DNA of 64,000 bases, from positions 186,001 to 250,000 of IMG/VR virus record IMGVR_UViG_3300031951_000003; one strand, given 5' to 3'. A program made the translations under genes and the position numbers. Below, piece after piece: positions 846 through 37,759 of this stretch. A model generated the notes under the pieces. The model saw only the letters and a program-made list of their open reading frames with translations, did no database searches and had not been told where the DNA came from. Every line of letters begins with the position of its first letter. Within the stretch, counting starts at the first letter, position 1.

Positions 846-890
846 ACTTTAATAAATATGTTTTTATTTCTATTCTACCATCAGTTTTAT

Positions 891-1835
891 TTAAAACTTC
901 AAACAACCAAAACTATTCATGTATCTTACTACTTTTTCCAAGTAACCAATACTTGTTTGTTGACCCGAACCTTTGTTTGGAAAATAATTGGCAATTGGTT
1001 TGTTTTGTAAAACCATAATTTTCAGTTCAGGTTTAGATTGTGGAAAGGGTTGATATAACGTTTTGTCACACGGTGCAGCATAATTCGGGTCTTTTGTTTC
1101 ACACCATCTAGTGATTAGACCTGGCATGTTGTGTGCAACTATTGCTAAATCCATTGCGTTGTTACCTGTCCCATCAATTCCCTTGATACCCTTAGTTCTA
1201 ACTGCAATCGGATTAACGGATGGACCTGTTCCATTACCTACTTTTAAGGCTCTTTTGTAATCATCATTGATTCTGTGTAATGTCCCTATTCCTTGTTTCA
1301 AAGAACTGAAAGAATCTGAATAGGAACCAACTTTTTTATCTAAACCATAATCATTCCAAGTTTTTTCGGTAAATTGTGCTGAACCCAAACTCATTTGTTT
1401 CTGAGGTTTACCTGAAATTTTATTCACCAAATTTAACCCACCCACAGCGGATTTTGGGAGAAATCCAAACCCTATCGAATGTAAAAATTCTGCCGCGTCA
1501 TCACTCCATTCACTATAAGTACGGAATAAAGTTTCCCTTCCAATAATTCCGATTGCGGCTTTGGCCATGAAAAGCAGTGTATTAGCATCAACCCCAAGTT
1601 CACTCATCAATTTTTGTTTGTTTTGAACTACGTATTCTGCAAATGGTCTTACGTCCTCGGGAATACACGGGTATTTCTTCTCTAAACTGATATTTTCATT
1701 TTGTTTACTGACTCTTGCGTTTTCACGTGAATTATCTAGCCCAAATGAAGTTATTCCTGGTCCTGTTTGTTCTTTAAGAATTCGTAAGATAATATTCTCT
1801 AAATCCGTCTCAGTTAATTTGATACTTTTTTTCAT
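891..1835 (-). CDS. Leader-B protein (MKKSIKLTETDL...LKEQ), possibly lysozyme-like fold
   Basis: Start reassigned to ATG 1835 below TATTTAT (1842-1848); payload unassigned. Confidence 0.6.
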   Translation of the reverse strand: MKKSIKLTETDLENIILRILKEQTGPGITSFGLDNSRENARVSKQNENISLEKKYPCIPEDVRPFAEYVVQNKQKLMSELGVDANTLLFMAKAAIGIIGRETLFRTYSEWSDDAAEFLHSIGFGFLPKSAVGGLNLVNKISGKPQKQMSLGSAQFTEKTWNDYGLDKKVGSYSDSFSSLKQGIGTLHRINDDYKRALKVGNGTGPSVNPIAVRTKGIKGIDGTGNNAMDLAIVAHNMPGLITRWCETKDPNYAAPCDKTLYQPFPQSKPELKIMVLQNKPIANYFPNKGSGQQTSIGYLEKVVRYMNSFGCLKF

Positions 1836-1967
1836 TATGAAATAAATATCCACCAAAAATGACTTTTAGTGATGAGGGAAATAATTATTATTCTTTCAGA
1901 ATAATAATAAGAATTAATAAAAATAAAAAAAAAAGAAAAAAAACTAGTAATACTAGTTCTAGGGATT

Positions 1968-2249
1968 TTAGCAAACCGCCACACAAGAATCGAAACCTAA
2001 AATATCCTCTATAATTTTTGTTACTTCATTACAAGGGTCGTCCAAGAAACCAATGTGAGAGTCGGGTTCATCTCTCCGATTGTCTTTGATGGTTAGAAAA
2101 ACAGCATGAGAATCGGGAATCCATTTATTTGATTTGTCATCATATTTTTGGGTGGGGACGATTTGTATTTCTTTGATTAAAATATCCCCTCCGAAGGAGG
2201 TGTTCAACGAAGACTCAACAAGTCGTTTTATTTTTCCAATCTTGTCCAT
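1968..2249 (-). CDS. Hypothetical protein
   Basis: ORF track, co-oriented and overlapping the upstream gene. Confidence 0.55.
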   Translation of the reverse strand: MDKIGKIKRLVESSLNTSFGGDILIKEIQIVPTQKYDDKSNKWIPDSHAVFLTIKDNRRDEPDSHIGFLDDPCNEVTKIIEDILGFDSCVAVC

Positions 2250-2614
2250 GTCATGTCAGAATTTAAAACCACAGAATAAAGATGTTTTTTATTCCATTCG
2301 TTTGGACCAATAAGTGACAAAGTCTTGGACCCATCAGGATTCTCATATAAGTGATATATCTCCCCAATAATCGGTTCAAATCTATAGTTTGACTCGTAGA
2401 CCTCTTGTTGGATAATCATCGAATTTTGGAGGTCCTGTGCTTCTTTAATGAGCTCTTCATATCGTCTCTTAACCACTCGGTCGACCTTATTGAGACCGTG
2501 TTTTTTAAAGGATGTTAAGTCTTGGGGTTCAATCTTTGGGGCACCTACATGGGTTGGGTAGGGAATTACCATTGGTTGTAGATTAACCTTATCGATATGA
2601 GATTGAGTTGACAT
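2228..2614 (-). CDS. DUF2452-like protein
   Basis: YPTHVGAPKIEP...FEPIIGEIYHLY...LSLIGPNEW resembles the Bacteroidota DUF2452 family (recalled, not searched). Confidence 0.6.
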   Translation of the reverse strand: MSTQSHIDKVNLQPMVIPYPTHVGAPKIEPQDLTSFKKHGLNKVDRVVKRRYEELIKEAQDLQNSMIIQQEVYESNYRFEPIIGEIYHLYENPDGSKTLSLIGPNEWNKKHLYSVVLNSDMTWTRLEK

Positions 2615-2668
2615 AAAAAAAAAGTCCCTTTATGGGACAATTTTATAAAATATATTTTGTAAAAACAA

Positions 2669-3166
2669 TTACTGACCTTTAATCATTCCGATTCCGTGTT
2701 TTAAAAATTCTTTCGCTCTTGGTGAGAGATGTTGCATTGCATATACTTTTTCAATATCCTTAACTAATTCTTCACCGTGTTCGTTCTCCTTGTAGAGTTC
2801 TATGATTTTGTCCATGGCCTTACAACACTCTTTCTTTGTTTCATCAAAATAATTGTAGGGTTTGAATCCTTTAAGATGAGTCATTATTTGGTGTGCTAAA
2901 TGTTCTCCACCATCCGTAACCTTCGGATGAAGTCTCAAGGTTTTGAGCAATTCTAACTTATCAACTAATCCCCTAACACCGTTCTTTCTTAATCTTACTC
3001 CCTCAATATAATCATCATCTTCATCATCGCCCATAATTTCTTCTAACGATTTAGTGTTACCAGCGTGACAAAACTTTCTATCATCTTTTTTCTCGTCTTC
3101 AGAAATATTATAAAATTTCCTGATTTCTTCTTTTTCAGATTCGGTTAAATAAAATCTTTTACTCAT
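2669..3166 (-). CDS. Leader-E protein (MSKRFYLTESEKEEIRKFY)
   Basis: Leader motif; ATAAATA at 3171-3177. Confidence 0.6.
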   Translation of the reverse strand: MSKRFYLTESEKEEIRKFYNISEDEKKDDRKFCHAGNTKSLEEIMGDDEDDDYIEGVRLRKNGVRGLVDKLELLKTLRLHPKVTDGGEHLAHQIMTHLKGFKPYNYFDETKKECCKAMDKIIELYKENEHGEELVKDIEKVYAMQHLSPRAKEFLKHGIGMIKGQ

Positions 3167-3200
3167 GTCTATAAATATAAGTTTCTTTCAAAATCTCCGA

Positions 3201-3908
3201 CTAATCAATCACACCGTGTAAAAATTGTATTTTCTCATCATTAGATAAAGTATCCTTCGTAAATGAAAATGGGTCGTAATCGAATTTGTAAAAATATGGT
3301 TTGTAAAAGTGGTAAACTAACTTCGCACTTTTTGTATCATACAAATCATTGAAGATAAAATACCTTTTATTTAAAAAAGGGTTGTCATTTAACAATTCTT
3401 GCATTTTTTGTCTATCAATTTCATTTTTTGACTTGATGAATGGTAGTTTGAGCAAATCTTGATATAAATTTTCAGCTCTTAGAGTGTAATCAACCGTTTC
3501 TTCATTGTTGAATTTCCACTTATTAAAGAACAGCTGGTCACTTCCATATTTTGGGGTCATGAAAACGTAAAATCCATGGTTCAGGAGAGACTTCTGAATC
3601 CAATTATTGAAATTTTTCCTTACGTTAGTTTTTTTCTTGGTTAGCGCTTCTGAATTATACGAGTTAACAAAGAATGAAAAGAACATATCATAGGGATTTC
3701 TACAACTTATGATTTTTTTTAAATTTTGAAATTTTTCAGGAATGAAATTTGAAAATGAATGCTCATAATACTTAAAATCCAAGTATTCCTCTTTGTCTTT
3801 TTGAGAATATCTGAAAAAATTGTAGTCTTCGAAAATTTTTTTGGTGATTCTAGTTGCACATCTTTCGTGTGCTAACCATACAACCTGATGCTCGGGTGAA
3901 ATATTCAT
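3201..3908 (-). CDS. Sulfotransferase family 2-like protein (degenerate 5'-PSB loop)
   Basis: HERCATR, CRNPYDMFFSFF, DYTLRAENLYQD; paralogue of 8486, 40384 and 41004. Confidence 0.6.
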   Translation of the reverse strand: MNISPEHQVVWLAHERCATRITKKIFEDYNFFRYSQKDKEEYLDFKYYEHSFSNFIPEKFQNLKKIISCRNPYDMFFSFFVNSYNSEALTKKKTNVRKNFNNWIQKSLLNHGFYVFMTPKYGSDQLFFNKWKFNNEETVDYTLRAENLYQDLLKLPFIKSKNEIDRQKMQELLNDNPFLNKRYFIFNDLYDTKSAKLVYHFYKPYFYKFDYDPFSFTKDTLSNDEKIQFLHGVID

Positions 3909-4180
3909 TATTTTATGAAATTATTCAAATTATTCAAAGTATAAACAGAATCATAAGGGTCGTAACAATAATCCCATAAGGATTTGTTTTTGATGAAAGG
4001 GTGTGGTTGACCCTTTGACCATTTTTTTCCTAATTCATAATCATTTCTACACCAAGTTAGTTTTCTATTTGGTGTTTCTACAAAAAATGAACGAATTTTT
4101 TGAATTAATCTGAAAAAAGACATGTAAAACGAATTATCTATATAAGTTTTTTGTATTATTAAATATTTTTTTTGCCTCAA
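3908..4180 (-). CDS. Hypothetical protein
   Basis: ORF track, tight packing with neighbours. Confidence 0.45.
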   Translation of the reverse strand: MRQKKYLIIQKTYIDNSFYMSFFRLIQKIRSFFVETPNRKLTWCRNDYELGKKWSKGQPHPFIKNKSLWDYCYDPYDSVYTLNNLNNFIK

Positions 4181-4325
4181 CCTCCAATAATCTTATTTTT
4201 TGTTCGTCTGAAGGGGAAACCTCAAAGTTTTGAGCTTTGATTTGTCTAATCTGTTCTTGAATTCTTTCATATTGAAACAAATATTGGTTATAAAGTTGAG
4301 CTTTTTGGTCGTTACTTAAATTCAT
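4134..4325 (-). CDS. Small coiled-coil hypothetical protein
   Basis: ORF track; helical Q/E/K-rich composition. Confidence 0.55.
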   Translation of the reverse strand: MNLSNDQKAQLYNQYLFQYERIQEQIRQIKAQNFEVSPSDEQKIRLLEVEAKKIFNNTKNLYR

Positions 4326-4369
4326 AGTTCATTTTTTTTTAAAGGTAGTTTTTTTTCACTCTAAGTAAA

Positions 4370-4657
4370 TTAACTACTGGTTTTTGTTTCATCGTATACC
4401 TGGTTGACCTTATCCAATATTTTGAAAAAATTGTTTTTTGTTGAAGACTTGGTCTTTTTTCCACCTTTGAACAAGGAATTGAGTTCTTTGAGTTTATCTA
4501 TTGAATCCTCAATTGAATCTTCAACACTCGAGTTACCGTTGTCAGTATTGTAATTTACTGGTTGAACATATATGTCTAAATCCATAGCAGCACTGTTGGA
4601 ACCAGTCTCAAATAAACGGTTGTATTGTTCTTTGGTGATGAGTATTTTTTTCATCAA
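4370..4657 (-). CDS. Leader-A-like protein (MKKILITKEQYNRLFE)
   Basis: Leader motif. Confidence 0.6.
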   Translation of the reverse strand: MMKKILITKEQYNRLFETGSNSAAMDLDIYVQPVNYNTDNGNSSVEDSIEDSIDKLKELNSLFKGGKKTKSSTKNNFFKILDKVNQVYDETKTSS

Positions 4658-4659
4658 TA

Positions 4660-5025
4660 TTAGATGACTCTCAATATTGTGTTAATTACAGTATCTGAAT
4701 TTAATTCAGACCAATCAAGAAGTTTTTCTTCTCCGTCCGATGAGACAACGATATGATTAGCATAATCAATATCCCCATATAGTTCAACTCCTGTAACATT
4801 TGCTAAATTCAAATAAACACCGTCATTAGCTCTGAAGATTACTTTGAAGTCTCCTACAAGGTTTGAGCATTCAACATCTGAAAAAACGTTGAATGATTTG
4901 TCTGTTGACACATTCAGAATTTCGAGAGTGATGTCTTCAGTTTCACCTGAAGGATTATGGATGAAGTCCTCACCAACTTGCTTGATGAATTTATCTGATT
5001 CGTTTCTTGAAAAAATTGTTGCCAT
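4660..5025 (-). CDS. Hypothetical protein
   Basis: ATAAATA at 5043-5049 upstream. Confidence 0.55.
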   Translation of the reverse strand: MATIFSRNESDKFIKQVGEDFIHNPSGETEDITLEILNVSTDKSFNVFSDVECSNLVGDFKVIFRANDGVYLNLANVTGVELYGDIDYANHIVVSSDGEEKLLDWSELNSDTVINTILRVI

Positions 5026-5049
5026 TTTAAAATGTTTTCTTTATAAATA

Positions 5050-15731: not shown

Positions 15732-16196
15732 TTAATTACATGAATTCATAAAATCTTTAGCCTGTGAAATCAAAGATTTTACTTTGACAGAATAAGTGCC
15801 AGCCTTACATTGTGGTTTAGGACAATAAACTCTATCTAATAATTTATAATAATCTTCCTCACCACCTATACTTTCAATTTTTCTAAAATCCTGCCATAAC
15901 TTGTAATCTTCAACAGATTGTTTCCAATTGTCATATCTTGCGTGACCCCTATATTCACCAGTAGCCGTCTTCGGTCTAATTTTGGCGTATTTCATACCAA
16001 AACAATTATTATTGGCTTTGAATATTTCACTTTCGAAATGACCTGTTTCTAATATTGCTTGGGCAATTGCTATTTCAGGAAACCTGATTCCTGAATTCTT
16101 CACATAACATGCAAATTCTGATGGAGAAAAGTTCTCCACTTCTGAATCAACACCCATGATTTCTTTAATTCTTGTTATGTCCTCGTAAAGATTCAT
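15732..16196 (-). CDS. Leader-C protein with GH73/FlgJ-type glucosaminidase domain
   Basis: MNLYEDITRIKEIMG; IAIAQAILETGHF...NNCFGMK...YDNWKQSVEDY. Confidence 0.75.
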   Translation of the reverse strand: MNLYEDITRIKEIMGVDSEVENFSPSEFACYVKNSGIRFPEIAIAQAILETGHFESEIFKANNNCFGMKYAKIRPKTATGEYRGHARYDNWKQSVEDYKLWQDFRKIESIGGEEDYYKLLDRVYCPKPQCKAGTYSVKVKSLISQAKDFMNSCN

Positions 16197-19559: not shown

Positions 19560-19651
19560 ATATTTTCTTTTAATTATAAAAAATATATTTTAGAATAACA
19601 AATAAAAAACCCCTCACAATGGAAGGGTTCAATTTTTTTTTTATTGAATAC

Positions 19652-20680
19652 TTAAACGTTATAAGTTGTATTTTGATTGTTCGGCGGATTGTTTTTTGCG
19701 TATGCATTAAATCTATTTAAAACATTTTGAATAGTTTGACCTGAATTCATAATACTCATCATTATCCAGAACGCGTTTACATCACCTGTATTAACTATTT
19801 TTACGAAGTCTTCCACCGTGATATCTTGACCAGGTTTTACCCCTATTATGTTTCTTATCCCATATAATCTTGATAAGATTTCAGTATCTTCATAGATATA
19901 TTCTTTTTTATTATTTCTCAACAATCGTAGGTAACTGTTTATTAGGTCGACAGGTTTTTTTATCCCCTGCGCTCTTAAATCATACGCGTATTTATACCAT
20001 TTATCTTTCTCGGCTTTAGTTAATTCTGACTTACGGGCTTCAGTTTCTGAACCGAAAAGGGACCCCAAACTTGTCCATATAGATTCTTTTTTGTTTCTAT
20101 CAATTTTCAAATCAACATCTATTTTTTGTTTAGGGTGGAATGGTTTCACATTATAAAGAATGTGTTGAATTTCATGAATTAAAATTCCGAGAGGGTCTTC
20201 GGTGTTGTTTGCACAATTAATATAAATAATCCCTTCAAAAGGGCTATAACCCATCACTGTATTTGGTCTAACGTGGGCAATTGAATCACTTCTCGGGTCT
20301 GAATAATATTGAAATCGCAAATCAGACAAAGCCTCGTTATAATCTTTGAATATCTCAGAGGCTTCGTTTGTAGAAATTTTCCAATTTTTTGCAAATTTAT
20401 TTAAAGTGACAGGACTTCTCAACCAATCTTTCCACCAATTTACCGCCTGACTTAATGTTGTTGTATTGTAACTCTTCATACAGTTGTCTCTTTCTTTTGC
20501 AAAATCCGCACGTCCTGCAATATTATTGTTTACATAAGTAGAACTTGCTGGTAAACGGGGTTGACCAAATTTCAAAGGTGGTATAGATGGGGTTGGTTTT
20601 TTTTGTTCGTCCAAATTATTGGATATTGCACCACCCATGAGTTCTTTAACTCGTGATATATTTTCATTCAAATTCATCAA
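19652..20680 (-). CDS. Leader-C protein with HEXXH metallopeptidase motif
   Basis: MNLNENISRVKELMG; ILIHEIQHILY; later EILSRL. Confidence 0.65.
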   Translation of the reverse strand: MMNLNENISRVKELMGGAISNNLDEQKKPTPSIPPLKFGQPRLPASSTYVNNNIAGRADFAKERDNCMKSYNTTTLSQAVNWWKDWLRSPVTLNKFAKNWKISTNEASEIFKDYNEALSDLRFQYYSDPRSDSIAHVRPNTVMGYSPFEGIIYINCANNTEDPLGILIHEIQHILYNVKPFHPKQKIDVDLKIDRNKKESIWTSLGSLFGSETEARKSELTKAEKDKWYKYAYDLRAQGIKKPVDLINSYLRLLRNNKKEYIYEDTEILSRLYGIRNIIGVKPGQDITVEDFVKIVNTGDVNAFWIMMSIMNSGQTIQNVLNRFNAYAKNNPPNNQNTTYNV

Positions 20681-20720
20681 TTATAAATATTACAACAATA
20701 AATTATGGCGGAATGAGATG

Positions 20721-21713
20721 TTATATCAAACGTTCGAATGAATTTTTTACCCTTTGTTTAAAAGAAGGGTTTTCCATATCAGGTGGAATTTGAAGTTCAC
20801 CGGAACCTATCGTAATTATACTTTTACCATCAGAGGGTAACCAAATACTTTTTTGGTGGGGCTTTATAAATTTTTCAATTTCAAAAATATCAGGTTCCTT
20901 GAAATTAATACAACCCTTACTCATTTTCCTTCTTTTACAACTCTGAGGGGAAAGGTCCGCGGTTGTTAAAGCATCTATTCTTGGTCTTTTTTTCGTTCCA
21001 TGAAATGCAGTTACAGTTTCGTTACCATCAAAGGTTTCAAATGACATGTATTTCTCTCCATAAGTTGCAATGTCTGATTGTCTCGCAATCTCATCTTCCA
21101 AAGTATCTTTGATTCCTGCAGTTCTTCTGAATATTCCAGCAGGGGTACTTTGTTCAGGCCATCTATCCTCTGTAGGAGCAAAACATTGCTCCATTCTCTT
21201 AACAAACCCTTCCATCCCTTCTTTTTTCAAATTTGCAACACTGTCCTTAAATTTATTCCAAACCTGTTTATAAAAATCTTGAACAACAAACTTGTCGCTT
21301 TGGTCCTCTTTACCTGTTAAAACCAAAAATGTTCTAACAAGTTCATATCCAGGATTGAATAGATAAATTCTGGCTTGAGAATCATCCAATATGGTAAATT
21401 TCTCATTTCCCATTATTTTATTTTTTCTGAGATAATCAACTTGGTCTTGAACTTGTTTGGATGCACTTGGTATTTTGTTAGTGAATAGTCGTTCAACCTT
21501 AGACTTTTCGGCAAACGCTTTACTAACAACAGACGGGTCTATCTTTTGGGGATACTTTCCGTCTTTTATTCGAGGGAAAACCCTCGAGGCTTCTACTGAA
21601 CCCATAGGTGATGACACGGGTCCACCTTGATTGAACAAACCTTCTTTTGTATAAAAAGGGGAAGTTTGTTCCAATAAAAAATTGTATTGTGATTCTGTGA
21701 TTAGATATTTCAT
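20721..21713 (-). CDS. Leader-A protein with L,D-transpeptidase (YkuD)-like domain
   Basis: MKYLITESQY; TPAGIF; AFHGT...MSKGCINF (H...C dyad). Confidence 0.6.
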   Translation of the reverse strand: MKYLITESQYNFLLEQTSPFYTKEGLFNQGGPVSSPMGSVEASRVFPRIKDGKYPQKIDPSVVSKAFAEKSKVERLFTNKIPSASKQVQDQVDYLRKNKIMGNEKFTILDDSQARIYLFNPGYELVRTFLVLTGKEDQSDKFVVQDFYKQVWNKFKDSVANLKKEGMEGFVKRMEQCFAPTEDRWPEQSTPAGIFRRTAGIKDTLEDEIARQSDIATYGEKYMSFETFDGNETVTAFHGTKKRPRIDALTTADLSPQSCKRRKMSKGCINFKEPDIFEIEKFIKPHQKSIWLPSDGKSIITIGSGELQIPPDMENPSFKQRVKNSFERLI

Positions 21714-21753
21714 CAACAATAAATATCACGACCCCATTGTCTGAGATTTAATT

Positions 21754-22368
21754 TTAAACTTTTGATATTGTTTGATTAAATTGGTCTGAATTAATTTGTT
21801 GAGAAATATAATTAGAAAGAAGTTGCTTGTATTTTTGTTCACCGAATTTTTGAATGTATCTATCTTTGTATTTGGTTATTGATGGTTCCACGGATTTTAA
21901 TAAACCTTCGATAGTTTTTAGTTCTGCTTGGATGACATTTTTATTTGTTGCAACCTTTTTCACCACTTGGACCTCAACTGGAGTTAATCTTGTTTTGGAA
22001 AGTAATTTTTCTGCCAACGCAACCGACCCTCTAACACCAACCTGATTTAGTTCAGGTATGAGACCCAAAAGTTTACCCGATAAAGGGATTAAAGAAAATA
22101 GAGTAATAATGGTTGCAGCTTTCTTATTTCCTTCTTGGAAATGTCTTGCAGCATCTCCAAGCCCAACCATAGATGATATAAATGGTCCAATAACAGGAAT
22201 TAGAACAGAAACAATACCCAAAAAAACATTCATGTCATGACTCGTCAAAGCTTTGTCCCAACCTTTTACAACGCTTTTTTGTTGACCTTGGGGAACATAA
22301 TTTCCCCAACCCGTCATGCTCTGTTCTGAAATTAATTTTAATTGTCTTTCAGTTATGATGTACTTCAT
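21754..22368 (-). CDS. Leader-A protein with hydrophobic helical hairpins (pre-toxin-like)
   Basis: MKYIITERQLKLISEQ; LIPVIGPFISSMVGLGDAA...EGNKKAA...LFSLIP. Confidence 0.6.
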   Translation of the reverse strand: MKYIITERQLKLISEQSMTGWGNYVPQGQQKSVVKGWDKALTSHDMNVFLGIVSVLIPVIGPFISSMVGLGDAARHFQEGNKKAATIITLFSLIPLSGKLLGLIPELNQVGVRGSVALAEKLLSKTRLTPVEVQVVKKVATNKNVIQAELKTIEGLLKSVEPSITKYKDRYIQKFGEQKYKQLLSNYISQQINSDQFNQTISKV

Positions 22369-22405
22369 AACAAATAAATATCACGACCCAATTATATGAG
22401 ATGGT

Positions 22406-22951
22406 CTATTTAAGGACATACACCCAAGCGTTTTGCTTGTAATTACCGAATTTTTTGAGTGCTGCGGTTGTTCTGTGCCAACCTTCCAATAAGTCATACT
22501 TTCCGTCCTTTGTTTCAACCACGATAATTGGTTCAGAAGACAAACCACCCTTTTCCAAATTAGATTGTTGAAAATCGTGTCTTTCGGTGTCTTTGGTAAT
22601 GTCAGTTCTTCTGAAACCTTCAATCTTTTTTCTCAAATCTTTCTGAACAAACTCTGTGAATGATTCCAACGACAAATCCAATATTTTATTTTCCCAATGA
22701 CCTTTACCGTGCCCTTCAACAAAACTAACGAGATAACTTCTCACAAGGTCTTTATATTCTTCAGGACTTTCATCTTTTATGTCTTTTGTGTTTCTATACA
22801 ACCAATCTCTTAAAACATATTCAGGCCAATCAATTCCCGTAATTTCTTTACTCTTATTTCTAAGATAATTCATATAACCTTCACGAGTTTCAACAATAAT
22901 CCCCATCAATTCTTTTACTCGTGATATATTTTCGTTCAAGTTCATCATCAA
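22406..22951 (-). CDS. Leader-C protein with ParB/Srx-like domain
   Basis: EPIIVVETKDGKYDLLEGWHRTTAA. Confidence 0.65.
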   Translation of the reverse strand: MMMNLNENISRVKELMGIIVETREGYMNYLRNKSKEITGIDWPEYVLRDWLYRNTKDIKDESPEEYKDLVRSYLVSFVEGHGKGHWENKILDLSLESFTEFVQKDLRKKIEGFRRTDITKDTERHDFQQSNLEKGGLSSEPIIVVETKDGKYDLLEGWHRTTAALKKFGNYKQNAWVYVLK

Positions 22952-22985
22952 TAAATATCACGACCCACTTGTCTGAGATGGTCAA

Positions 22986-23552
22986 CTAATTGAAAAGTCT
23001 TTGGATATTATCAACGTATGGAGAATTATTTGGCTCATTGACCCAAACATACGCTTTTAATGGCTTGTTTTTCATTTTTGCCAAGAAAACTCTATGAGCG
23101 CCGTCAACAACTTCATAACCCTTATCATTTTTTCTTAACGTTATTGGTGGGAGTTTACCAAAATTGACTTTCCTCGGGTCTGACGGGTTTTCTCTGAAAT
23201 ATTTATCTGATTTACCTGAAACATAGTCATCAAATTTTTGTTGTCTATCAATAACAAATTCATCTTCTAAATTAATTTCATTTGGGTCAACAAGTATCGG
23301 TCCCGTTAAAACCCAATCTTTGATTTCGTAAATTGTTCTTCTCCATTCTGCAAACGGTAACCCCATTTCATCATTATATTGATAGTCGATTATTTCCTTT
23401 TGTTCAGGAAACATTTTCAAAAGCAAATTATAAATCTCCTCAGATTTTTCTCGGGTAACAATTTTATTGACAAAGTCCCAATCAAATTCTTCAGATACCA
23501 AACCCATCAATTCTTTTACTCGTGATATATTCTCGTTCAGATTCATCAACAA
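22986..23552 (-). CDS. Leader-C protein with ParB/Srx-like domain
   Basis: PPITLRKNDKGYEVVDGAHRVFLA. Confidence 0.7.
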   Translation of the reverse strand: MLMNLNENISRVKELMGLVSEEFDWDFVNKIVTREKSEEIYNLLLKMFPEQKEIIDYQYNDEMGLPFAEWRRTIYEIKDWVLTGPILVDPNEINLEDEFVIDRQQKFDDYVSGKSDKYFRENPSDPRKVNFGKLPPITLRKNDKGYEVVDGAHRVFLAKMKNKPLKAYVWVNEPNNSPYVDNIQRLFN

Positions 23553-23573
23553 TAAATATCACGACCAATTTGT

Positions 23574-24470
23574 TTAAGATGGTGTCTGAACAATGTCTTT
23601 GAACTTGTCCAAATACACAGTTCTTTCAGAATCAACATTTATTAGTTGTGTGTTAGGTGATAAATAATTATCCTTCACTTTAATATAATACTGACCGTCA
23701 TCTACTATACCGAGTTTTGAAATAAACTCATCAATAAACTTTTTGTTCGAGGTCGACTTCGACAACAAACCTTCCAACCCTTTCTTGGTCAAAATTGTGG
23801 AAGGGTCTCCTGTCTTTTCTGATGGTCTTTCTTTCGTGGCTTCATACTTTCCCAAATATTGTTCCAAAACCATTTCAATATCTCGGCTGTCGTATTTAAA
23901 GTTGGGGTCTGTTTTTGCTATTTCATTTCTCTTAGAAACATTTTCCACCAATAGATAAATTGGGGTATGTAATAGAATTTCTTTGAAGGTTACATTCGGT
24001 AAATATTTTTGCAATTGGTTGTCGACAGTATCCACAAATATCTTTTTCCAAGGCCCTGTTTTGATTTCTTGAGCGACATACCATAATCTTGCGTCAGTTC
24101 CCTTAAGATATTCCTTTTCGAATGGATTTTCAGGAACAGTATCACCATTTTCACGATAAATACCCGAAACAATTCCAGCATCTTCTCTTTCTTTTGCCCA
24201 CTGTCTTATATTTGGATGGTCCAATTTAAGTCTTCTTTCCTCACCTTCTCTCCCTTCTTCACCCGTCCCACTAAAATCATCAGAAGCAATCACAACCCAT
24301 TGATTTGGGTCCTTGGATTCATAATAAGGAACAGCATTCATTTGTTTCAACAAATAAGATTTACCCGCAGAAGAAGTTCCATCCAATAAGACTACCGATT
24401 TATCATCAGCTTGTTCAACCAGCAATCCCATCACTTCCTTAATTCTTTTTATATTTTCGTGTAAATTCAT
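23574..24470 (-). CDS. Leader-C protein with P-loop kinase domain (chloramphenicol phosphotransferase-like)
   Basis: VVLLDGTSSAGKS Walker A; IFVDTV. Confidence 0.65.
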   Translation of the reverse strand: MNLHENIKRIKEVMGLLVEQADDKSVVLLDGTSSAGKSYLLKQMNAVPYYESKDPNQWVVIASDDFSGTGEEGREGEERRLKLDHPNIRQWAKEREDAGIVSGIYRENGDTVPENPFEKEYLKGTDARLWYVAQEIKTGPWKKIFVDTVDNQLQKYLPNVTFKEILLHTPIYLLVENVSKRNEIAKTDPNFKYDSRDIEMVLEQYLGKYEATKERPSEKTGDPSTILTKKGLEGLLSKSTSNKKFIDEFISKLGIVDDGQYYIKVKDNYLSPNTQLINVDSERTVYLDKFKDIVQTPS

Positions 24471-24538
24471 AACAATAAATATACCGACCCATTTGTTTAG
24501 ATGGTGATAATGAGGTGGTCACAATGAAGGGACAAGGA

Positions 24539-24610
24539 CCGAACCGACGAAGTCGGTCGGGGACCGTCGGCCGAAAAAACGGGGGAAAATACCGACGGAG
24601 TCGGTTTCCG
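24539..24610 (+). other. GC-rich tandem hairpins with C-GNA-G triloops
   Basis: ACCGAC-GAA-GTCGGT at 24543-24557 and ACCGAC-GGA-GTCGGT at 24591-24605, both extendable through bulges. Confidence 0.75.
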
Positions 24611-24646
24611 TTTGCGAATATCTGGTTAAAATAAGAAAAAAAGATA

Positions 24647-24943
24647 CTACATCTTAAATGCATCATGACAAAGGAGCTCATCCTCAAAATAAATGTCCAA
24701 GCTGCAAACACCACCCCCACCAAAGTACTGAGAAAGTTCGGTCATTCTTGTCATAAGTCTTCTCATAAGATGATGACAAGAAATCATTCCTGTTTGCTTG
24801 TCAGCAGGTTTCAAATAAACTTTAACAGTTATTATACCCAATGCCCAATTTTTACCGACCCAAATGTTTTCAATTTCGGGGAATTCATCAATTAAGATGG
24901 AATCAAATAATTTCTGATATGAAGATGGGGGAACTTTCATCAA
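24647..24943 (-). CDS. Hypothetical protein
   Basis: ATAAATA upstream; DEFPEIENIWV. Confidence 0.55.
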   Translation of the reverse strand: MMKVPPSSYQKLFDSILIDEFPEIENIWVGKNWALGIITVKVYLKPADKQTGMISCHHLMRRLMTRMTELSQYFGGGGVCSLDIYFEDELLCHDAFKM

Positions 24944-26656: not shown

Positions 26657-27307
26657 CTATGCCAACATTGTTTGAACATCTTTGATTTGTGTATTGAAGT
26701 CATCAATATAAGGTTTCAACTCTTTTGATTTATTTGATAAAGCTGCGAGTTTGCTTGAGACAATAGCGAGAGCATCTGCGGCTTTTGATTTGAATATTTT
26801 TACAAGAGCAATCATGAAGGAATATTTCCAAGGTTCTTTTGCTAAGTTGAAACCTGCAGATTTTATTATACCCATGTTTTTCATAATCACACGAAGTTCA
26901 AACGGTGTCTTTTTTAATAAAGATTTTACTTCCACTCTCGCAGCAATGTTTGAGGCATTACCTCCAACAGGAATTAGTGACGAAGCAAATGTAACAACCG
27001 CCAATAAAGACATTTCAATTTTTTCTTCAGTTGTCTTTGCAAAGAAATACCTAACAACATATGTGAGAGCATGTGTAACATCAATACCAATTGATATTAG
27101 ATTACCAATTCCTGGTACAGCATCAACCAAACCTGAAACAATATCAGCATAATCATCAGCATCCAAATTTGGACCCAACTTACCCAATTTATTCTGAGCT
27201 GCGACTTGATTATCAACCTTCTTTAATTCACGTCTTTCGTAATCTGTTGAATAACCTTGTTCCATCATGATGGTCTTCAATTGAGATTCTGTGATAATGT
27301 ATTTCAT
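26657..27307 (-). CDS. Leader-A protein with hydrophobic helical hairpins
   Basis: MKYIITESQLKTIMMEQ; DAVPGIGNLISIGID...FASSLIPVGG; related to 21754. Confidence 0.65.
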   Translation of the reverse strand: MKYIITESQLKTIMMEQGYSTDYERRELKKVDNQVAAQNKLGKLGPNLDADDYADIVSGLVDAVPGIGNLISIGIDVTHALTYVVRYFFAKTTEEKIEMSLLAVVTFASSLIPVGGNASNIAARVEVKSLLKKTPFELRVIMKNMGIIKSAGFNLAKEPWKYSFMIALVKIFKSKAADALAIVSSKLAALSNKSKELKPYIDDFNTQIKDVQTMLA

Positions 27308-27384
27308 ATTACAATAAATACTTTGGGAAATAAAAAACCCCCTTCGTGAATGAAGAGGGTCTTGTTATAGAAATTATTTTTTTT

Positions 27385-27858
27385 TTAAATCCCAATACAA
27401 CTTAACAATGCTTTTACATCTTTCGCTGGGTCAGAACCTAAACCACCTTGGTCTTCAGGTAATCCTGTTAAAAAGATTACAATTAGTGAAGATAATGCCA
27501 ACACACCTCCAGCAACCAATCCAACAGGGTTTGCAATTAACATAGCAACGATTCCAAGAGCATAAGCTCCAGCACTTGTAGTTAAAAACATTAAACTTGT
27601 GAGTTGTTTTGATGTGATACATTTTTTGATTTTTTCCTGTATTTTAGGGTCAGGTTTTGCACCACTTTCAAATTTTTGTATTGCCGCATCAATCATTGAT
27701 TGTGCTTCAGCTGATTCGGTCAAATATGGTTTTACATCACCTTGTTTAGTTTCAACCAATTGTTTGAACTTCTCGTTGTAAACTCTCATTCCACCTTTAT
27801 GTTGTTCACGGATGGCGTTTTTTTCTTCTTCAGAAATATTGTTTAAAATGTGTTTCAT
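27385..27858 (-). CDS. Leader-E protein with C-terminal TM hairpin
   Basis: MKHILNNISEEEKNAIREQH; two long hydrophobic helices. Confidence 0.65.
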   Translation of the reverse strand: MKHILNNISEEEKNAIREQHKGGMRVYNEKFKQLVETKQGDVKPYLTESAEAQSMIDAAIQKFESGAKPDPKIQEKIKKCITSKQLTSLMFLTTSAGAYALGIVAMLIANPVGLVAGGVLALSSLIVIFLTGLPEDQGGLGSDPAKDVKALLSCIGI

Positions 27859-27942
27859 AATTTTAATTTTATTATAAATATATTCGGAAATAAAAAACCC
27901 CCTTCGTAATTGAAGAGGGTCTTGTTATTTTGAAATGTTTTA

Positions 27943-28449
27943 TTAGAGCGGACCATATTTTCTCATTCTTCTTGATGCTTGTCTACATTCCTTACTCGTT
28001 CTTGTGTTGCCACCAATCAATTTGATTAGTTTAACAACCAACATTAAAATGATAATACCTGCAAACACCTGAATGAAAACAACAGGGATTGCCATTGCAC
28101 CAATTGTTACAATCTCTCCCACTTGTTCACTTTGAGTTTTTCTTTTGAAAATTGATTTAACCTTTTTGATTAACTCCTTAACATCTTTGGCTGAAGTCAG
28201 ACCATCGATTTGTTCTTTGATTTTCTGAAGCATTGTCTTTTGTTTCTCATCCGCAGTTGGAGGAGTTTCAAGTGGACAATCGTTCAACGCAAATTCAATA
28301 TCTTCAGTCGATACGGGTTCTTCCCCAACTGTTGATAGTTCATTATTAATCACGTCAAGAACTTGAGATTCATCTTCTTTCAATAATCTCTTTTCCAATC
28401 TGATGTTGGCTTCTTGTATGTGTCTGATTTTACTATAACTTCTATTCAT
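27943..28449 (-). CDS. Leader-D protein with C-terminal TM helix
   Basis: MNRSYSKIRHIQEANIRLEKRLLKE. Confidence 0.65.
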   Translation of the reverse strand: MNRSYSKIRHIQEANIRLEKRLLKEDESQVLDVINNELSTVGEEPVSTEDIEFALNDCPLETPPTADEKQKTMLQKIKEQIDGLTSAKDVKELIKKVKSIFKRKTQSEQVGEIVTIGAMAIPVVFIQVFAGIIILMLVVKLIKLIGGNTRTSKECRQASRRMRKYGPL

Positions 28450-28550
28450 AATTTGATTTTATAATAAATACAAAATTTTCCCAAAAATTTTTAAATGAAA
28501 AAACCCCCTTCGAAATTGAAGAGGGTCTTGTTCTATAATTCACAATGATG

Positions 28551-28850
28551 TTATTCATCAAACATTGATTCCAATTCTTTAACAACCTCCTTTGCATAAT
28601 CAATAATCTCATCGGCTTGTTCATCAGTCAAATCGTCGTCTTGATAAGCCTCATGCATTATTTTATAAATTTCATTAATACATCTTTCAACCTCATCCAA
28701 ATCCTCCTCCTCATCCATTGCGTGATTTGCAACCATATCAATTACTTTAAAATAATCTTCAGTAGGGTCATCCTCTCTTCTTTGTTCCTTTACTATCTTA
28801 TTAACCAATCTTGTTAAGTCAGATTCTGTGAGTTTTACTATCTTTTTCAT
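28551..28850 (-). CDS. Leader-B protein with highly acidic payload
   Basis: Start moved to 28850: MKKIVKLTESDLTRLVNKIVKEQ; DEEEDLDEVE, DDDLTDEQADE. Confidence 0.65.
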   Translation of the reverse strand: MKKIVKLTESDLTRLVNKIVKEQRREDDPTEDYFKVIDMVANHAMDEEEDLDEVERCINEIYKIMHEAYQDDDLTDEQADEIIDYAKEVVKELESMFDE

Positions 28851-28940
28851 ATGAAATAAATATCCCAAAAATTTTAAAATGAAAAAACCCCCTTCGTAAT
28901 TGAAGAGGGTTTTGTTCTATAAATTAAGATTATTAGTATC

Positions 28941-29381
28941 TTACAAACTTTGTATCAATTTGAATACTTGACCCCTATTCATATTTTCAGTTTTAATTAA
29001 TTTGGGTTTCTCGTCCCCAACCCTTGTATAATATTCAACTTTGTATGGTCCATTAATGTCTTTTAGTCCACTAAAATATATTTTTTTGAATTCATAATTA
29101 GGGTGATTATTTTTACTCAATTGTATAAAATCCCCTTCATCATCCGAAAAATTTTCAACTTTGTTGTTTCCTTTTGCCATACTAATAAGGTTCTCGGTAT
29201 AGATATTTAGTTTCTGTTTTTTTACATTATTATATCCCTTTTCTCTAAGTATATTTTTAATTTTATTTAAAAAACCACCATATATATCATTTTCACCATC
29301 AGTCTTTGTATTTTGTTCTTTAATAACTTTATTAACCAAACGAATCAAATCGTTTTCTGTTAATCTTATAATCTTTGACAT
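28941..29381 (-). CDS. Leader-B protein, paralogue of 30815
   Basis: MSKIIRLTENDL; shared GPY/FxVEY(Y/F)...KxIKTE C-terminal motif. Confidence 0.65.
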   Translation of the reverse strand: MSKIIRLTENDLIRLVNKVIKEQNTKTDGENDIYGGFLNKIKNILREKGYNNVKKQKLNIYTENLISMAKGNNKVENFSDDEGDFIQLSKNNHPNYEFKKIYFSGLKDINGPYKVEYYTRVGDEKPKLIKTENMNRGQVFKLIQSL

Positions 29382-29491
29382 AGAATTTATTTTCCAATAA
29401 ATATACCAAAAAAGGAGAATTTTTTCCCAAAAATTTTAAAATAAAAAACCCCCTTCTTTTCAGAAGAGGGTCTTGTTTTAAAAAAATATAA

Positions 29492-30007
29492 TTAAATTAA
29501 AGAGAGCTTAATTTTTACACCATTACCCGCGTCAATAGTTGCACTTTTTCCTTGATTACCAGCCAAAGATTGTAATCCCGCATTTAGTTTGTCTTGAGGT
29601 ACTCTAAATTTCATCCATCCATCGGAGGTCAGAGCGTCGGTAGGAATTAATTCTTTCATGATTTTTTTCATAGCATTACCTGATGGTTGAGCTTCTCCCA
29701 GTAATGTTCCTTGTCTGTCTCTTCTAACATTTCTCAAAATTACATTAAAAGGCACGTTAGGTAAAAATGAACCTGGGTCATACACCCCTTTTACACTGTA
29801 TTTGTAAGTTGTGTTTGGAATGTTCTGTCCTTTGTTGTCTCTTTGTGAAAGATAAATTGTACCAGTTCCGTCGCTTGAAGCATTAACCAAAGCTGGAGTT
29901 GCAAGAACAGTTAACAAAGGAACTTGAGCCATAGGTGCTTGTTCTTTTATAACTCTCTTAACCAAATTCAACAAGTCGGATTCAGTTAATTTTATAATTT
30001 TCGACAT
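29492..30007 (-). CDS. Leader-B beta-rich protein
   Basis: MSKIIKLTESDLLNLVKRVIKEQ. Confidence 0.65.
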   Translation of the reverse strand: MSKIIKLTESDLLNLVKRVIKEQAPMAQVPLLTVLATPALVNASSDGTGTIYLSQRDNKGQNIPNTTYKYSVKGVYDPGSFLPNVPFNVILRNVRRDRQGTLLGEAQPSGNAMKKIMKELIPTDALTSDGWMKFRVPQDKLNAGLQSLAGNQGKSATIDAGNGVKIKLSLI

Positions 30008-30110
30008 ATAACTTATTTTACTATAAATAGACCCAAAAAGGACAATTTTTTCCCAAAAAATTTTTTTAAGAAAAAACCCCCTTCGTAATTGAAGAGGGTC
30101 TTATTTCAGA

Positions 30111-30407
30111 TTAACTTTGACCGAATCGTCTGTAGTATCTTATTTCATAATATCTTTTATCCTTACAATCTATTCTTGTTCTAGAACCATACTCATATGA
30201 GGGAATACAAAAACCTGATTTAATATTTTTTATTAGTTCTTCAGTTGATTTAACCGCATTAGGGTCTGATTTTATTGTTTGAGGAGTTGATTGTTCAGAA
30301 AGATTGTGCATACCAAATCTACTTTCAGGTTGTTCCTTCAATAATCTTTTTTCCAACATTAAATTTGATTCCTGAATATGTCTTATTTTACTGAAACTTC
30401 TATTCAT
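30111..30407 (-). CDS. Leader-D protein
   Basis: Start moved to 30407: MNRSFSKIRHIQESNLMLEKRLLKEQ. Confidence 0.65.
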   Translation of the reverse strand: MNRSFSKIRHIQESNLMLEKRLLKEQPESRFGMHNLSEQSTPQTIKSDPNAVKSTEELIKNIKSGFCIPSYEYGSRTRIDCKDKRYYEIRYYRRFGQS

Positions 30408-30462
30408 AAAATATGTTTCCAATAAATACTCCCAAAAATTTTTTTCTCAGTTGAAGGATAAA

Positions 30463-30714
30463 TTAAATCAAATGGTCGTGTTTTAGAAAAAGAATATAAC
30501 CTTCAATATCTCTCAATACTTGGTTTACATTCCTACCCGACAAATGATAAAACCCATGTTTACTTTTTTTGATTGTTATAAGTTCCCCATTTGAAAAATA
30601 TATTCTTTTCGGTGACCTTCTAACAACCGAGACCTTATTACTCCCATTCATATAATGGTCCCCAACATTACAATCCAAAATAAACTGATGTGATTTTATC
30701 CATAAATTTTCCAT
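30463..30714 (-). CDS. Hypothetical protein under a host-type promoter
   Basis: No leader; sigma-A promoter at 30719-30750. Confidence 0.55.
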   Translation of the reverse strand: MENLWIKSHQFILDCNVGDHYMNGSNKVSVVRRSPKRIYFSNGELITIKKSKHGFYHLSGRNVNQVLRDIEGYILFLKHDHLI

Positions 30715-30718
30715 AACA

Positions 30719-30750
30719 CAAAAATAAGAAATGTTCTTTTTTTTCCCAAA
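30719..30750 (-). promoter_or_regulatory. Bacteroidota sigma-A promoter
   Basis: Minus strand TTTG-N20-TATTTTTG. Confidence 0.7.
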
Positions 30751-30814
30751 AATTTCAAATTAAAAAACCCCCTTCGTTTCGGAAGAGGGTCATGTTTATA
30801 GTTAAATTTCTTTA

Positions 30815-31198
30815 TTACCCAAAGTTTTGGAGAAGTTGCCCAATTTTATATCCATCCAATTTTTCTGTTTTGATTTTTTTTCCACCTTTAAAATATTCTA
30901 CAACGAAAGGTCCGAACATACTATAGTTATTCAAATAAATTATTGTAGATTCTGGACTTGTCCCCGTGTCACTTAAAATCAATTTTTTTTGACCTCCTTC
31001 ATCATAAAAATCAACCGTGTAAGGTCTCTTGTACATTGATAAAAGTGAATAATTGCTTTTAATAAGTTTGAATCCTTTCTTTAAAAAATCTTTTTTTACC
31101 ATTTGTAAAAAAGATTCTAAAGTCTCTGATTGTTCTTGAATTACTCTTTTCGCCAAACGAACCAAATCTTGTTCTGTAAGTTTTATAACTTTTGACAT
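30815..31198 (-). CDS. Leader-B protein
   Basis: Start moved to 31198: MSKVIKLTEQDLVRLAKRVIQEQ. Confidence 0.65.
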   Translation of the reverse strand: MSKVIKLTEQDLVRLAKRVIQEQSETLESFLQMVKKDFLKKGFKLIKSNYSLLSMYKRPYTVDFYDEGGQKKLILSDTGTSPESTIIYLNNYSMFGPFVVEYFKGGKKIKTEKLDGYKIGQLLQNFG

Positions 31199-31308
31199 AT
31201 AAATAATTTTATTATAAATATACCGAAAAAGGACAATTTTTCCCAAAAATTTTTTTTGCGTTATTCAAGGTATTATCCCCCCCAAAACTGACATTTTGAC
31301 CTACATAA

Positions 31309-31369
31309 GGGGGGATACGGGGGGAGGGGGGCCCCCATAGGGGGGTATGCCCCCATGCCGAAGGGGGGT
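31309..31369 (+). other. G-tract cluster, potential G-quadruplex/hairpin
   Basis: Five G6 runs at about 31309, 31319, 31326, 31340 and 31363, interleaved with C5 runs. Confidence 0.6.
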
Positions 31370-31371
31370 GT

Positions 31372-31430
31372 TGTGGATAAATAGTTATTCCCACCCCCTA
31401 TACATTTATCAACAGATAGGATGTGGAAAA
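31372..31430. promoter_or_regulatory. DnaA-box-like cluster 1
   Basis: TGTGGATAA (perfect, 31372-31380), TTATCAACA (31406-31414), TGTGGAAAA (31422-31430). Confidence 0.55.
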
Positions 31431-37084: not shown

Positions 37085-37759
37085 TTATTTTTTTATTTTT
37101 ACACAGTTTGGGTATCTTTTCCCAAACATCGTTTTCATACCCTTTTGGGTGTATCCTTTCCAGCATCTCTCTTTCAGTTCTCCTTCTGTTTGTTCCATCT
37201 TTTGACCCGACTTAGGTCTTATGACAATTATTTGTCCGACGTATAAGTTTTGTGGATTGATTGGCGTTTCGTAAAAGTCAAACCAACATCTTCTGAAGTC
37301 AGTTTTACTGACAACCCTCATTTCTTCTAAGTAAGGGTCAAGTATGAATAAGTTATCATCATTATACCCTATAACAACTGAAGAGTGACCTTCAGGTGGG
37401 TCACCACAAAACCAATCAACAATTACAGGGACGTTAGCATCAACCAACTTAATAACTTCATCAATTGTAGAATTATTTTTAAGATAAACATCAAATCCGA
37501 GTGCCTCTGCAGCACATGCCATATCTTCACTTTTACACCCCAATTCATAGGTATGGTCACAAATCTCCGCAATATCTTTTTCACTCATGTTTTTTCCGTA
37601 GTAACCAAATACCATCCTGAGTGATGCGGGTCCACAGGTGCTATCATCTGATTGCAAAAAATGAGGAACCTCCAATAACTTTGTTGGTTGTTGATTAACT
37701 TGTTCAACAATTTCAGTTATAATTTGGACTAATTTTTCTTCAGTTAATCTTATCTTCAT
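37085..37759 (-). CDS. Leader-B protein with C39-like cysteine peptidase and a CWKGY...YPNCVK tail
   Basis: QSDDSTCGPASLRMV; GHSSVVIGY; ILDP. Confidence 0.75.
   Translation of the reverse strand: MKIRLTEEKLVQIITEIVEQVNQQPTKLLEVPHFLQSDDSTCGPASLRMVFGYYGKNMSEKDIAEICDHTYELGCKSEDMACAAEALGFDVYLKNNSTIDEVIKLVDANVPVIVDWFCGDPPEGHSSVVIGYNDDNLFILDPYLEEMRVVSKTDFRRCWFDFYETPINPQNLYVGQIIVIRPKSGQKMEQTEGELKERCWKGYTQKGMKTMFGKRYPNCVKIKK

Follow-up and report, generated by a model that had tools for sequence, protein, structure and literature searches.

A shuffled array of leader-tagged gene cassettes in a freshwater T4-like jumbo phage, and a possible role of its leaders in capsid targeting

The internal-protein loci of T-even phages are polymorphic (Repoila et al. 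1994, as summarised in PMC2839356, PMC12373910 and PMC3012670). Counts of internal-protein variants in relatives range from at least 10 to more than 30, and their shuffling has been ascribed to shared elements (PMC12373910, PMC2839356). T4 capsid-targeting sequences are N-terminal propeptides of 10-20 amino acids (aa), and the cleavage motif of the prohead protease gp21 is L/I-x-E, cut behind the Glu (PMC9026906, PMC5694885). A second precedent is found in RB49/phi1-type phages, where PeSL elements, a conserved regulatory module, lie between single-gene units in hyperplastic regions (PMC2839356, PMC4122927). Here we describe a locus comparable to both, an array of six single-gene cassettes in a 64,000-nucleotide stretch of DNA (hereafter the window) that represents bases 186,001-250,000 of the 321,139-bp IMG/VR record IMGVR_UViG_3300031951_000003. 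The original prediction for positions 19652-24506 of the window was that repeat-mediated recombination inserts, deletes and swaps tagged payloads in the manner of an integron without an integrase, with PeSLs as the analogy. We find that every gene opens with a promoter-plus-leader module and that cassettes differ in set and order among relatives; homologous recombination is probably the cause, and the leaders may well be capsid-targeting propeptides on injected effectors.

The record is a T4-like jumbo phage from lake metagenomes, 321 kb in length and complete, with direct terminal repeats and a completeness rating of 100%; GC content of the window is ~33%. Among its genes are those of a gp21-type prohead protease (PF03420, E=1.5e-22; genome 107417-108133) and of a major capsid protein of gp23 type (PF07068, E=4.6e-62), and the head gene order of portal, protease, scaffold and capsid is conserved. 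The closest isolates by capsid protein are Flavobacterium phage immuto and Microcystis phage Mel-JY01, alongside a 484-kb uncultured phage, at an identity of only 42-45%. Given the gp21/gp23-type head genes and this low capsid identity to the nearest isolates, we regard the phage as a distant freshwater T4-like jumbo phage.

Six minus-strand genes fill positions 19652-24470, each opened by its own module. The array and its borders are laid out as follows, in the direction of transcription and with the positions of the window.

24505-24640, minus strand: GC-rich hairpin block with a weak terminator at 24611-24595 (folding z=-2.4; terminator scan; homology to the related loci L284, L306, L307 and L373)
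24471-24506, minus strand: junction J6, with the CACCATCTAAACAAATGGGTCGG element and a TATTTAT promoter at 24475-24481, 4 nt from the ATG
23574-24470, minus strand: cassette 6, leader MNLHENIKRIKEVMGLLVE (type 3) and a P-loop (GTSSAGKS) kinase-like payload, 298 aa
23547-23583, minus strand: junction J5, promoter at 23552-23558, holding the stop codon of cassette 6 (23574-23576)
22986-23546, minus strand: cassette 5, leader MNLNENISRVKELMGLVSE (type 3) and a ParB-like payload (VVDGAHRV), 186 aa (PHROG 1033, E=2e-4)
22946-22982, minus strand: junction J4, promoter at 22951-22957
22406-22945, minus strand: cassette 4, leader MNLNENISRVKELMGIIVE (type 3) and a second ParB-like payload (LLEGWHRT), 179 aa (PHROG 4715, E=1e-5)
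22369-22405, minus strand: junction J3, promoter at 22374-22380
21754-22368, minus strand: cassette 3, leader MKYIITERQLKLISE (type 1) and a membrane protein with two hydrophobic segments, 204 aa
21714-21750, minus strand: junction J2, promoter at 21719-21725
20721-21713, minus strand: cassette 2, leader MKYLITESQYNFLLE (type 1) and a YkuD-like (L,D-transpeptidase fold) cell-wall enzyme, 330 aa
20678-20720, minus strand: junction J1, degenerate, retaining only CATCTCA and the promoter at 20683-20689
19652-20677, minus strand: cassette 1, leader MNLNENISRVKELMG...NLDE (type 3), a disordered linker of ~40 aa and an HEIQH zincin-like payload, 341 aa
19607-19630, minus strand: intrinsic terminator at the array end, a 9-bp stem followed by a T run (terminator scan)

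Each unit thus consists of an array-specific element of ~25 nt, the TATTTAT promoter motif, an ATG without a ribosome-binding site, a leader of 15-22 aa and a payload. The repeat that had been predicted to sit directly before the starts is readily recovered. The 18-mer CAATAAATATCACGACCC (plus strand, up to two mismatches) lies directly before a start codon at 21717, 22372, 22949, 23550 and 24473, giving five matches against a chance expectation of 0.05, and no shuffle attained five. The junction at ~20.7 kb, J1, is degenerate, again as predicted, and the proposed search of the genome for more copies, which we ran, found none outside the array in the 321,139 bp. Junction identity spans ~35 nt upstream of the ATG and, in the three units for which this had been claimed, runs on ~45 nt into the coding sequence: positions 22902-22982 match 23503-23583 at 90% identity over 81 nt, and both match 20634-20714 at 70%. 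The stop codon of the gene starting at 23574 indeed falls inside a repeat, J5. The array had also been described as free of poly-U terminators, and a terminator scan of the gene strand within 19652-24470 found none; one stands at the array end and a weak one before the array. An Rfam scan gave sub-threshold terminator-like matches only, and a weak isrJ-like match at 19607-19630 was rejected as an artefact of the terminator there.

Among relatives, the kinase-like payload has 333 homologues, and 79 loci came from a metagenome scan. Relatives whose payloads are 80-93% identical to those of the window carry other cassette sets, in other orders, between the same flanking genes. The order in the window is kinase, ParB, ParB, membrane protein, YkuD and HEXXH. 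The locus L307, which has both flanks as in the window, instead carries eight cassettes, for a protein like the membrane protein, proteins of 197 and 180 aa, YkuD, a new protein of 290 aa, one of 93 aa, the kinase and HEXXH, such that the YkuD gene stands ahead of the kinase and the HEXXH payload is on a type-1 leader. In L284 and L285 an extra 84-aa cassette lies between the upstream flank and the kinase, with a junction copy on each side, and the downstream cassettes differ. Further arrangements occur in L311, L305, L306, L308 and L373. The kinase genes of the rearranged relatives are 87-93% identical to that of the window. The identical gene order in all relatives that would have spoken against shuffling was not found; the syntenic comparison proposed with the original prediction shows cassette gain and reordering with breakpoints in the module.

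Where blocks of DNA homology start and stop, the break falls in the junction or at the leader/payload boundary. The kinase block extends from 24470-24505 to 23542-23587 in six relatives. The YkuD block of L307 runs from 21671, just past the leader, through the next junction and leader to 20634, the leader/payload boundary, and the HEXXH block of the same locus begins at 20608. Tandem duplication, with later divergence of all but the 5' ends and the repeats as mere relics, would also leave genes on the same strand, in tandem and with similar 5' ends. It is already contradicted, however, by payload motifs and predicted folds that are unrelated, by identical payloads that have other leaders and neighbours in relatives, by homology blocks that end at the module and by the extra cassette between two junction copies in one relative, and we give it hardly any credence. 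We are highly confident in the module architecture and in the mosaicism. IMG/VR contigs with four repeat copies belong to the same phage and, being 100% identical, are uninformative on shuffling, although they show, with four identical contigs, that the array is stable in this lineage; five complete jumbo relatives (G006-G010) are too divergent for DNA comparison, with the module motifs alone matching.

Homologous recombination between module copies, which has also been proposed for PeSLs and for the T-even internal-protein loci (PMC2839356), is the probable cause of the mosaicism, judging from the position of the breakpoints. The alternative is that the 25-nt junction is the site of a dedicated recombinase of unknown family and the array a true integron-like system. 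The element is array-specific, lies just outside the promoter and is kept in relatives, all of which would suit such a site. However, no tyrosine or serine recombinase (PF00589, PF00239) was found in the complete genome, in a search that matched all or nearly all control genomes. Furthermore, the six junctions fold no better than shuffled sequence (z -0.5 to +1.0) and have no inverted-repeat structure, several breakpoints lie at the leader/payload boundary and not in the element, and short homology patches suffice for recombination in T4-type phages (PMC2839356). A dedicated recombinase is thus very unlikely. The genome also contains a weak RecA-like match. Like integron cassettes, the units are unrelated single genes in the same orientation with a recurring joint sequence and a content that varies among relatives; since the array has no integrase, no attC-like fold and a promoter of its own in every cassette, it is not an integron. 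What had been proposed, insertion, deletion and swapping through the repeats without an integrase, is supported by the breakpoints, from which we infer the recombination itself, and by the absence of a tyrosine or serine recombinase.

The analogy with PeSLs held in part. As with PeSLs, a conserved module separates single-gene units in a hyperplastic region, close relatives differ by breaks in the module and no dedicated recombinase is needed. PeSLs, however, combine a sigma-70-like early promoter with a GC stem-loop terminator and end before the ATG, whereas the module here has a late-type promoter, has no stem-loop and extends into the coding leader. Without an early promoter and a stem-loop, these modules are not PeSLs, and the T-even internal-protein loci offer a closer precedent. 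In a second cassette array, at 27300-31300 of the window, each unit has a strong terminator (AAGACCCTCTTC...GAAGGGGGTTTTTT), then the TATTTAT promoter and then a leader, of type 2 or another type. This array truly pairs a promoter with a stem-loop and is nearer to PeSLs in layout than is the array at 19652-24506. Runs of C7 and G6-G8 (CCCCCCCAAAACTG...GGGGGGATACGGGGGGAGGGGGGCCCCC) lie between cassettes at ~31256-31400.

The promoter motif is not confined to the array. TATTTAT(T/A) occurs within 40 nt upstream of 102 of the 396 genes, preferentially 11-13 or 19-23 nt from the ATG. Genes of known function that have it encode the tail sheath, tail fibre, portal, scaffold and prohead protease, and those lacking it include DNA polymerase, helicase, ribonucleotide reductase and an SbcC-like protein. 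Sigma-70-like sites are not enriched (56 seen, 54.7 expected). The late promoter of T4 is one short element, and TATTTAT is similar in that respect; outside the array nothing is conserved upstream of the motif, i.e. there is no general upstream promoter element. We infer that TATTTAT is the late promoter of this phage. In the array only 4-6 nt separate it from the ATG and a Shine-Dalgarno sequence is lacking, so the transcripts would be leaderless or almost leaderless. The junction's 5' part, CCATCT.A.ACAA.TGGGTCGTG, is specific to this array and its relatives.

Leaders fall into a few types. In the array, MNLNENISRVKELMG is found in four genes and MKYIITE.Q..L.EQ in two. The latter defines type 1, with MSKIVRLTESDL.RLVKRVIKEQ as type 2 and MNL.ENI.RIKE.MG-h-h-x-E as type 3 (h, hydrophobic). 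Type 2, a related type additional to the two of the array, predominates in the genes neighbouring the array; a fourth and a fifth type are hinted at as well. The genome has ~34 tagged genes, 29 of them N-terminal type-1/2 matches in a profile search and five type 3, and 27 lie in the window. Beyond this phage, searches with degenerate DNA patterns recovered type-3 leaders joined to other payloads in at least eight other viral contigs and type-1 leaders in more than 119, where arrays of 3-7 genes are frequent; overall, more than 130 viral contigs encode leader-tagged proteins, which number in the hundreds, and all fetched loci together hold 349 distinct type-1/2 and 108 distinct type-3 proteins. 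One 5-kb contig, L190 (IMGVR_UViG_3300042556_002990, 331-5035), consists almost entirely of tagged genes with all leader types and has the same junction element before the first; two of its payloads are repeat proteins with CPxCG-type zinc-ribbon-like repeats. Among isolated phages, tblastn with a 24-aa leader gave no match, nor was the leader profile found in the nearest isolates (Flavobacterium phage immuto and Microcystis phage Mel-JY01). None of the papers open to full-text search contained the leader peptide strings.

All leader types end in hydrophobic-x-Glu, usually followed by Gln, and this is where conservation stops. The terminal Glu is invariant in the alignments of the kinase, HEXXH and YkuD families. 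In type-3 proteins a hydrophobic-x-E lies within 6 aa past the MG in 94 of 108 cases, compared to 8% of control windows, in a set dominated by the kinase family. For types 1 and 2, the first hydrophobic-x-E is 8 or 13 residues past the TE core in 165 of 349. Two structure models show the leader as a separate N-terminal helix, to which the HEXXH protein adds a disordered linker of ~40 aa, with low confidence for helix and linker alike.

The same payload family can carry different leaders. HEXXH proteins are found with types 1, 2, 3 and the fifth, and a member 79% identical to that of the window bears type 1, the window's own protein bearing type 3. Among YkuD-like proteins we find types 1, 2 and 3, with a homologue (P0139) of 87-90% identity carrying type 3 in place of the window's type 1. 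ParB-like proteins have types 1 and 3, a 38% identical homologue of cassette 4 in L305 being of type 1. A kinase homologue at 87% identity has no leader at all, in another genome context.

Might the conserved 5' coding sequence instead act as RNA or DNA, for instance as a start enhancer for leaderless mRNA or a downstream part of the promoter? The promoter is 4-6 nt from the ATG and there is no Shine-Dalgarno sequence, so that the first codons would form the 5' end of the mRNA. Against this, synonymous sites vary almost as much in the leader as in the payload. Across 28 kinase genes, diversity at codon positions 1, 2 and 3 is 0.21, 0.09 and 0.34 in the leader and 0.18, 0.10 and 0.46 in the payload, and since third positions vary (pi 0.34 vs 0.46) the leader is not conserved as DNA or RNA sequence as such. 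Moreover, three to five leader types with different nucleotide sequences are interchangeable, and many tagged genes in relatives lie inside operons without a TATTTAT promoter. An element of this kind is thus highly improbable. Together, the codon pattern, the leader swaps, the hydrophobic-x-Glu end and the separate helix in the models argue for a modular signal that acts at the protein level.

What would such a signal do? We favour, as somewhat more probable than all other readings together, that the leaders are capsid-targeting propeptides with a protease site, carried by injected effectors, by analogy with T4. The array would then be a hyperplastic locus of late-expressed genes whose proteins are most likely packed in the prohead and injected with the DNA. 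The leader would dock the protein to the assembling head core, a gp21-type prohead protease would remove it after the Glu, and the payloads would act at or just after injection. General homologous recombination between module copies (~35-80 nt) would insert, delete, reorder and re-tag payloads while leaving expression and targeting intact; because junction, promoter and leader are common to the cassettes and to related phages, recombination could swap the payloads. We count the leader motif, the gp21-type protease, the leader swaps, the late-type promoter and the tagged genes of the head cluster as pointing to capsid targeting. A gp21-type protease is encoded in five of the five leader-bearing complete genomes tested (288-322 kb). 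Two tagged genes are in or near the head gene cluster, one of them immediately following the capsid gene. The first 34 residues of the capsid protein (MGALLESGLVGNIGLKHLKVIKEDTINKWDKLGF; genome 103335-105146, outside the window) are identical in four of five relatives (L420-L424) and near-identical in the fifth, where whole capsid proteins share only 63-85% identity, and LKVIKED within this N-terminus resembles the end of the type-2 leader (RVIKEQ).

The leaders could also address another destination or partner, namely the tail or baseplate, a shared chaperone or the cell envelope at lysis. Modularity and constraint at the protein level suit any targeting signal, peptidoglycan enzymes among the payloads mean that lysis proteins could be part of the set, and late expression suits tail and lysis proteins too. 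The leaders are, however, hydrophilic amphipathic helices and not signal peptides or membrane anchors, their end motif is exactly that of the gp21 family, whose protease is found in all complete relatives tested, kinase-like and ParB-like payloads make no sense for lysis, and tagged genes adjoin the capsid gene. We consider another destination unlikely. Clp unfoldases are known to select substrates through N-terminal tags. A ClpB/ClpC-like AAA+ protein (PHROG 4871, E=7e-246) is encoded next to the structural genes at genome 120795-122810, outside the window. The leader might then be a recognition tag for this protein, for timed unfolding or degradation. The gene's place near the structural genes would fit, but no specific link connects the two and both the hydrophobic-x-Glu end and the co-occurrence with gp21 would go unexplained; we attach very little weight to this reading.

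Several observations weigh against our account of the array as a shuffled locus of capsid-targeted effectors. Virion presence and cleavage of the tagged proteins are predictions from the genes. The ~34 tagged genes per genome are far above T4's handful, and their leaders are unlike the T4 capsid-targeting sequence MKTYQEFIAE, sharing nothing beyond Met-Lys with the N-termini of ipI, ipII and ipIII. About one third of type-1/2 proteins have no hydrophobic-x-E within 20 aa past the core (the I-T-E of the core excepted), and [LIV]xE in the scaffold protein is not enriched beyond composition. The junction element of ~25 nt is neither a hairpin nor part of a general promoter. Finally, the array recurs near word for word in at least 20 sequencing runs from at least 13 lake or freshwater metagenome studies, with no rearranged joints or excised circles seen; these are mostly contigs, which drop rare variants and so are no test of rare rearrangements, and the raw-read runs held almost no reads of this phage.

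The payloads themselves were compared with their predicted labels. That of cassette 1 stood, as HEIQH is invariant across the family and structure matches to zincin metallopeptidases are weak but consistent (model pLDDT 66). The YkuD label of cassette 2 holds by motif, with a Pfam match at E=0.015 and a conserved His...SxGC catalytic motif, and distant homologues add a peptidoglycan-binding domain. The membrane protein has its two hydrophobic segments at residues ~45-73 and ~85-105. Cassettes 4 and 5 are ParB-like by weak PHROG matches only (1e-5 and 2e-4), and BLASTP similarity between them is confined to the leader. The kinase label of cassette 6 comes down to the P-loop GTSSAGKS and weak CPT/ATPase matches; nearly all of its 333 homologues have a type-3 leader, and its AlphaFold model (pLDDT 57) did not match any fold significantly. 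Searches of the PDB by sequence and by profile with the kinase, HEXXH and both ParB-like proteins found no matches. Other tagged genes of the window have clearer functions: a glucosaminidase (15732-16196; PF01832, E=8e-14; type-3 leader), a Peptidase_C39-like cysteine peptidase (37085-37759; E=1e-18; type-2-like leader) and a clear YkuD L,D-transpeptidase (49955-50626; E=1e-20; type-1 leader). In L284 (2980-3255), a pterin-4a-carbinolamine dehydratase domain (PF01329) bears a type-1 leader, which is unexpected cargo under capsid targeting.

Polyvalent phage proteins contain a zincin-like peptidase, ParB/Srx-like domains, peptidoglycan-attacking enzymes and a zeta-like kinase, and are thought to be injected with the DNA (PMC5512222). 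Our payload set comes close to this domain list and so independently fits the idea of cargo. There the domains are fused in one giant polypeptide, whereas here they are separate tagged genes of 180-340 aa. The ejection proteins of giant phages (phiKZ, 201phi2-1, SPN3US; PMC5694885, PMC9026906) are likewise comparable in being many head-internal proteins cut after Glu by a gp21-related protease, with paralogues that share conserved N-termini. Their propeptides, however, are mostly longer than 100 aa, they do not form shuffled cassettes and the phage lineage is different.

The closest parallel remains the T-even internal-protein loci. In T4, as we confirmed from the fetched genes, ipII and ipIII have the common leader MKTYQEFIAE and near-identical DNA over 60 nt upstream. 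Both systems combine unrelated genes with a common N-terminal leader of 10-20 aa and common upstream DNA; the leader ends in hydrophobic-x-Glu here and in L/I-x-E, the gp21 cut site, in T4, and, as far as the cited summaries describe the T-even loci, gene number, order and identity vary among relatives. In those summaries the T-even proteins are injected and act against host defences, whereas encapsidation is here a reading of gene content. The differences lie in three to five leader types instead of one, with unrelated leader sequences, in ~34 tagged genes instead of the 3-4 of T4, in payloads that are mostly enzymes of 100-500 aa instead of small basic inhibitor proteins, and in the TATTTAT promoter with mRNAs that are probably leaderless or nearly so. 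As the leaders have no similarity to MKTYQEFIAE beyond Met-Lys, we regard the locus, on present sequence comparison, as an analogue of the T4-type internal-protein system and not as a member of its sequence family; it is likely a much expanded variant of the T-even arrangement.

The DNA at the upstream border of the array has features of its own. The block at 24505-24640 has ~60% GC, compared to 33% for the genome, and forms two stable hairpins (z=-2.4); it is single-copy and is kept before the array in relatives. In two metagenome runs its contig depth is 5-8x that of its surroundings and many contigs stop there, so other genomes in those lakes contain the block as well. Elsewhere in this genome, GC-rich stretches are limited to very long collagen-like (Gly-X-Y) tail-fibre genes at genome 268000-275200, outside the window. 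Next to the block, 117 bp (24636-24752) are missing from the otherwise identical contig L042 (IMGVR_UViG_3300008117_000032), altering the C-terminal end of the gene at 24647-24943; this could be a strain variant or an assembly artefact.

To conclude, we present here a natural case of gene shuffling through short regulatory-plus-coding modules, a clear one without a dedicated recombinase even if the leaders had some other function. Tagged genes make up ~9% of the genes of this genome and are mostly without known function. If the leaders are capsid-targeting, a motif search would list the injected proteins of an uncultivated clade of 290-320-kb phages and would yield testable candidates for anti-defence or cell-entry effectors and for protein-packaging tags. 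The principle of the T4 internal proteins, a shared tag, a variable cargo and the DNA of the tag as a handle for recombination, would then be old and expandable, and several tag types and enzyme cargo would extend it. More tentatively, and in our view doubtfully as yet, this freshwater jumbo-phage clade might use an 'address code' of interchangeable propeptides that loads dozens of separate effectors (cell-wall enzymes, peptidases, nucleases, kinases and membrane proteins) into the head, and leader types may differ in the amount, position or ejection order that they specify. If so, the injected arsenal of never-grown phages could be read from sequence only, and the leaders would offer a natural portable tag with which to package foreign proteins.

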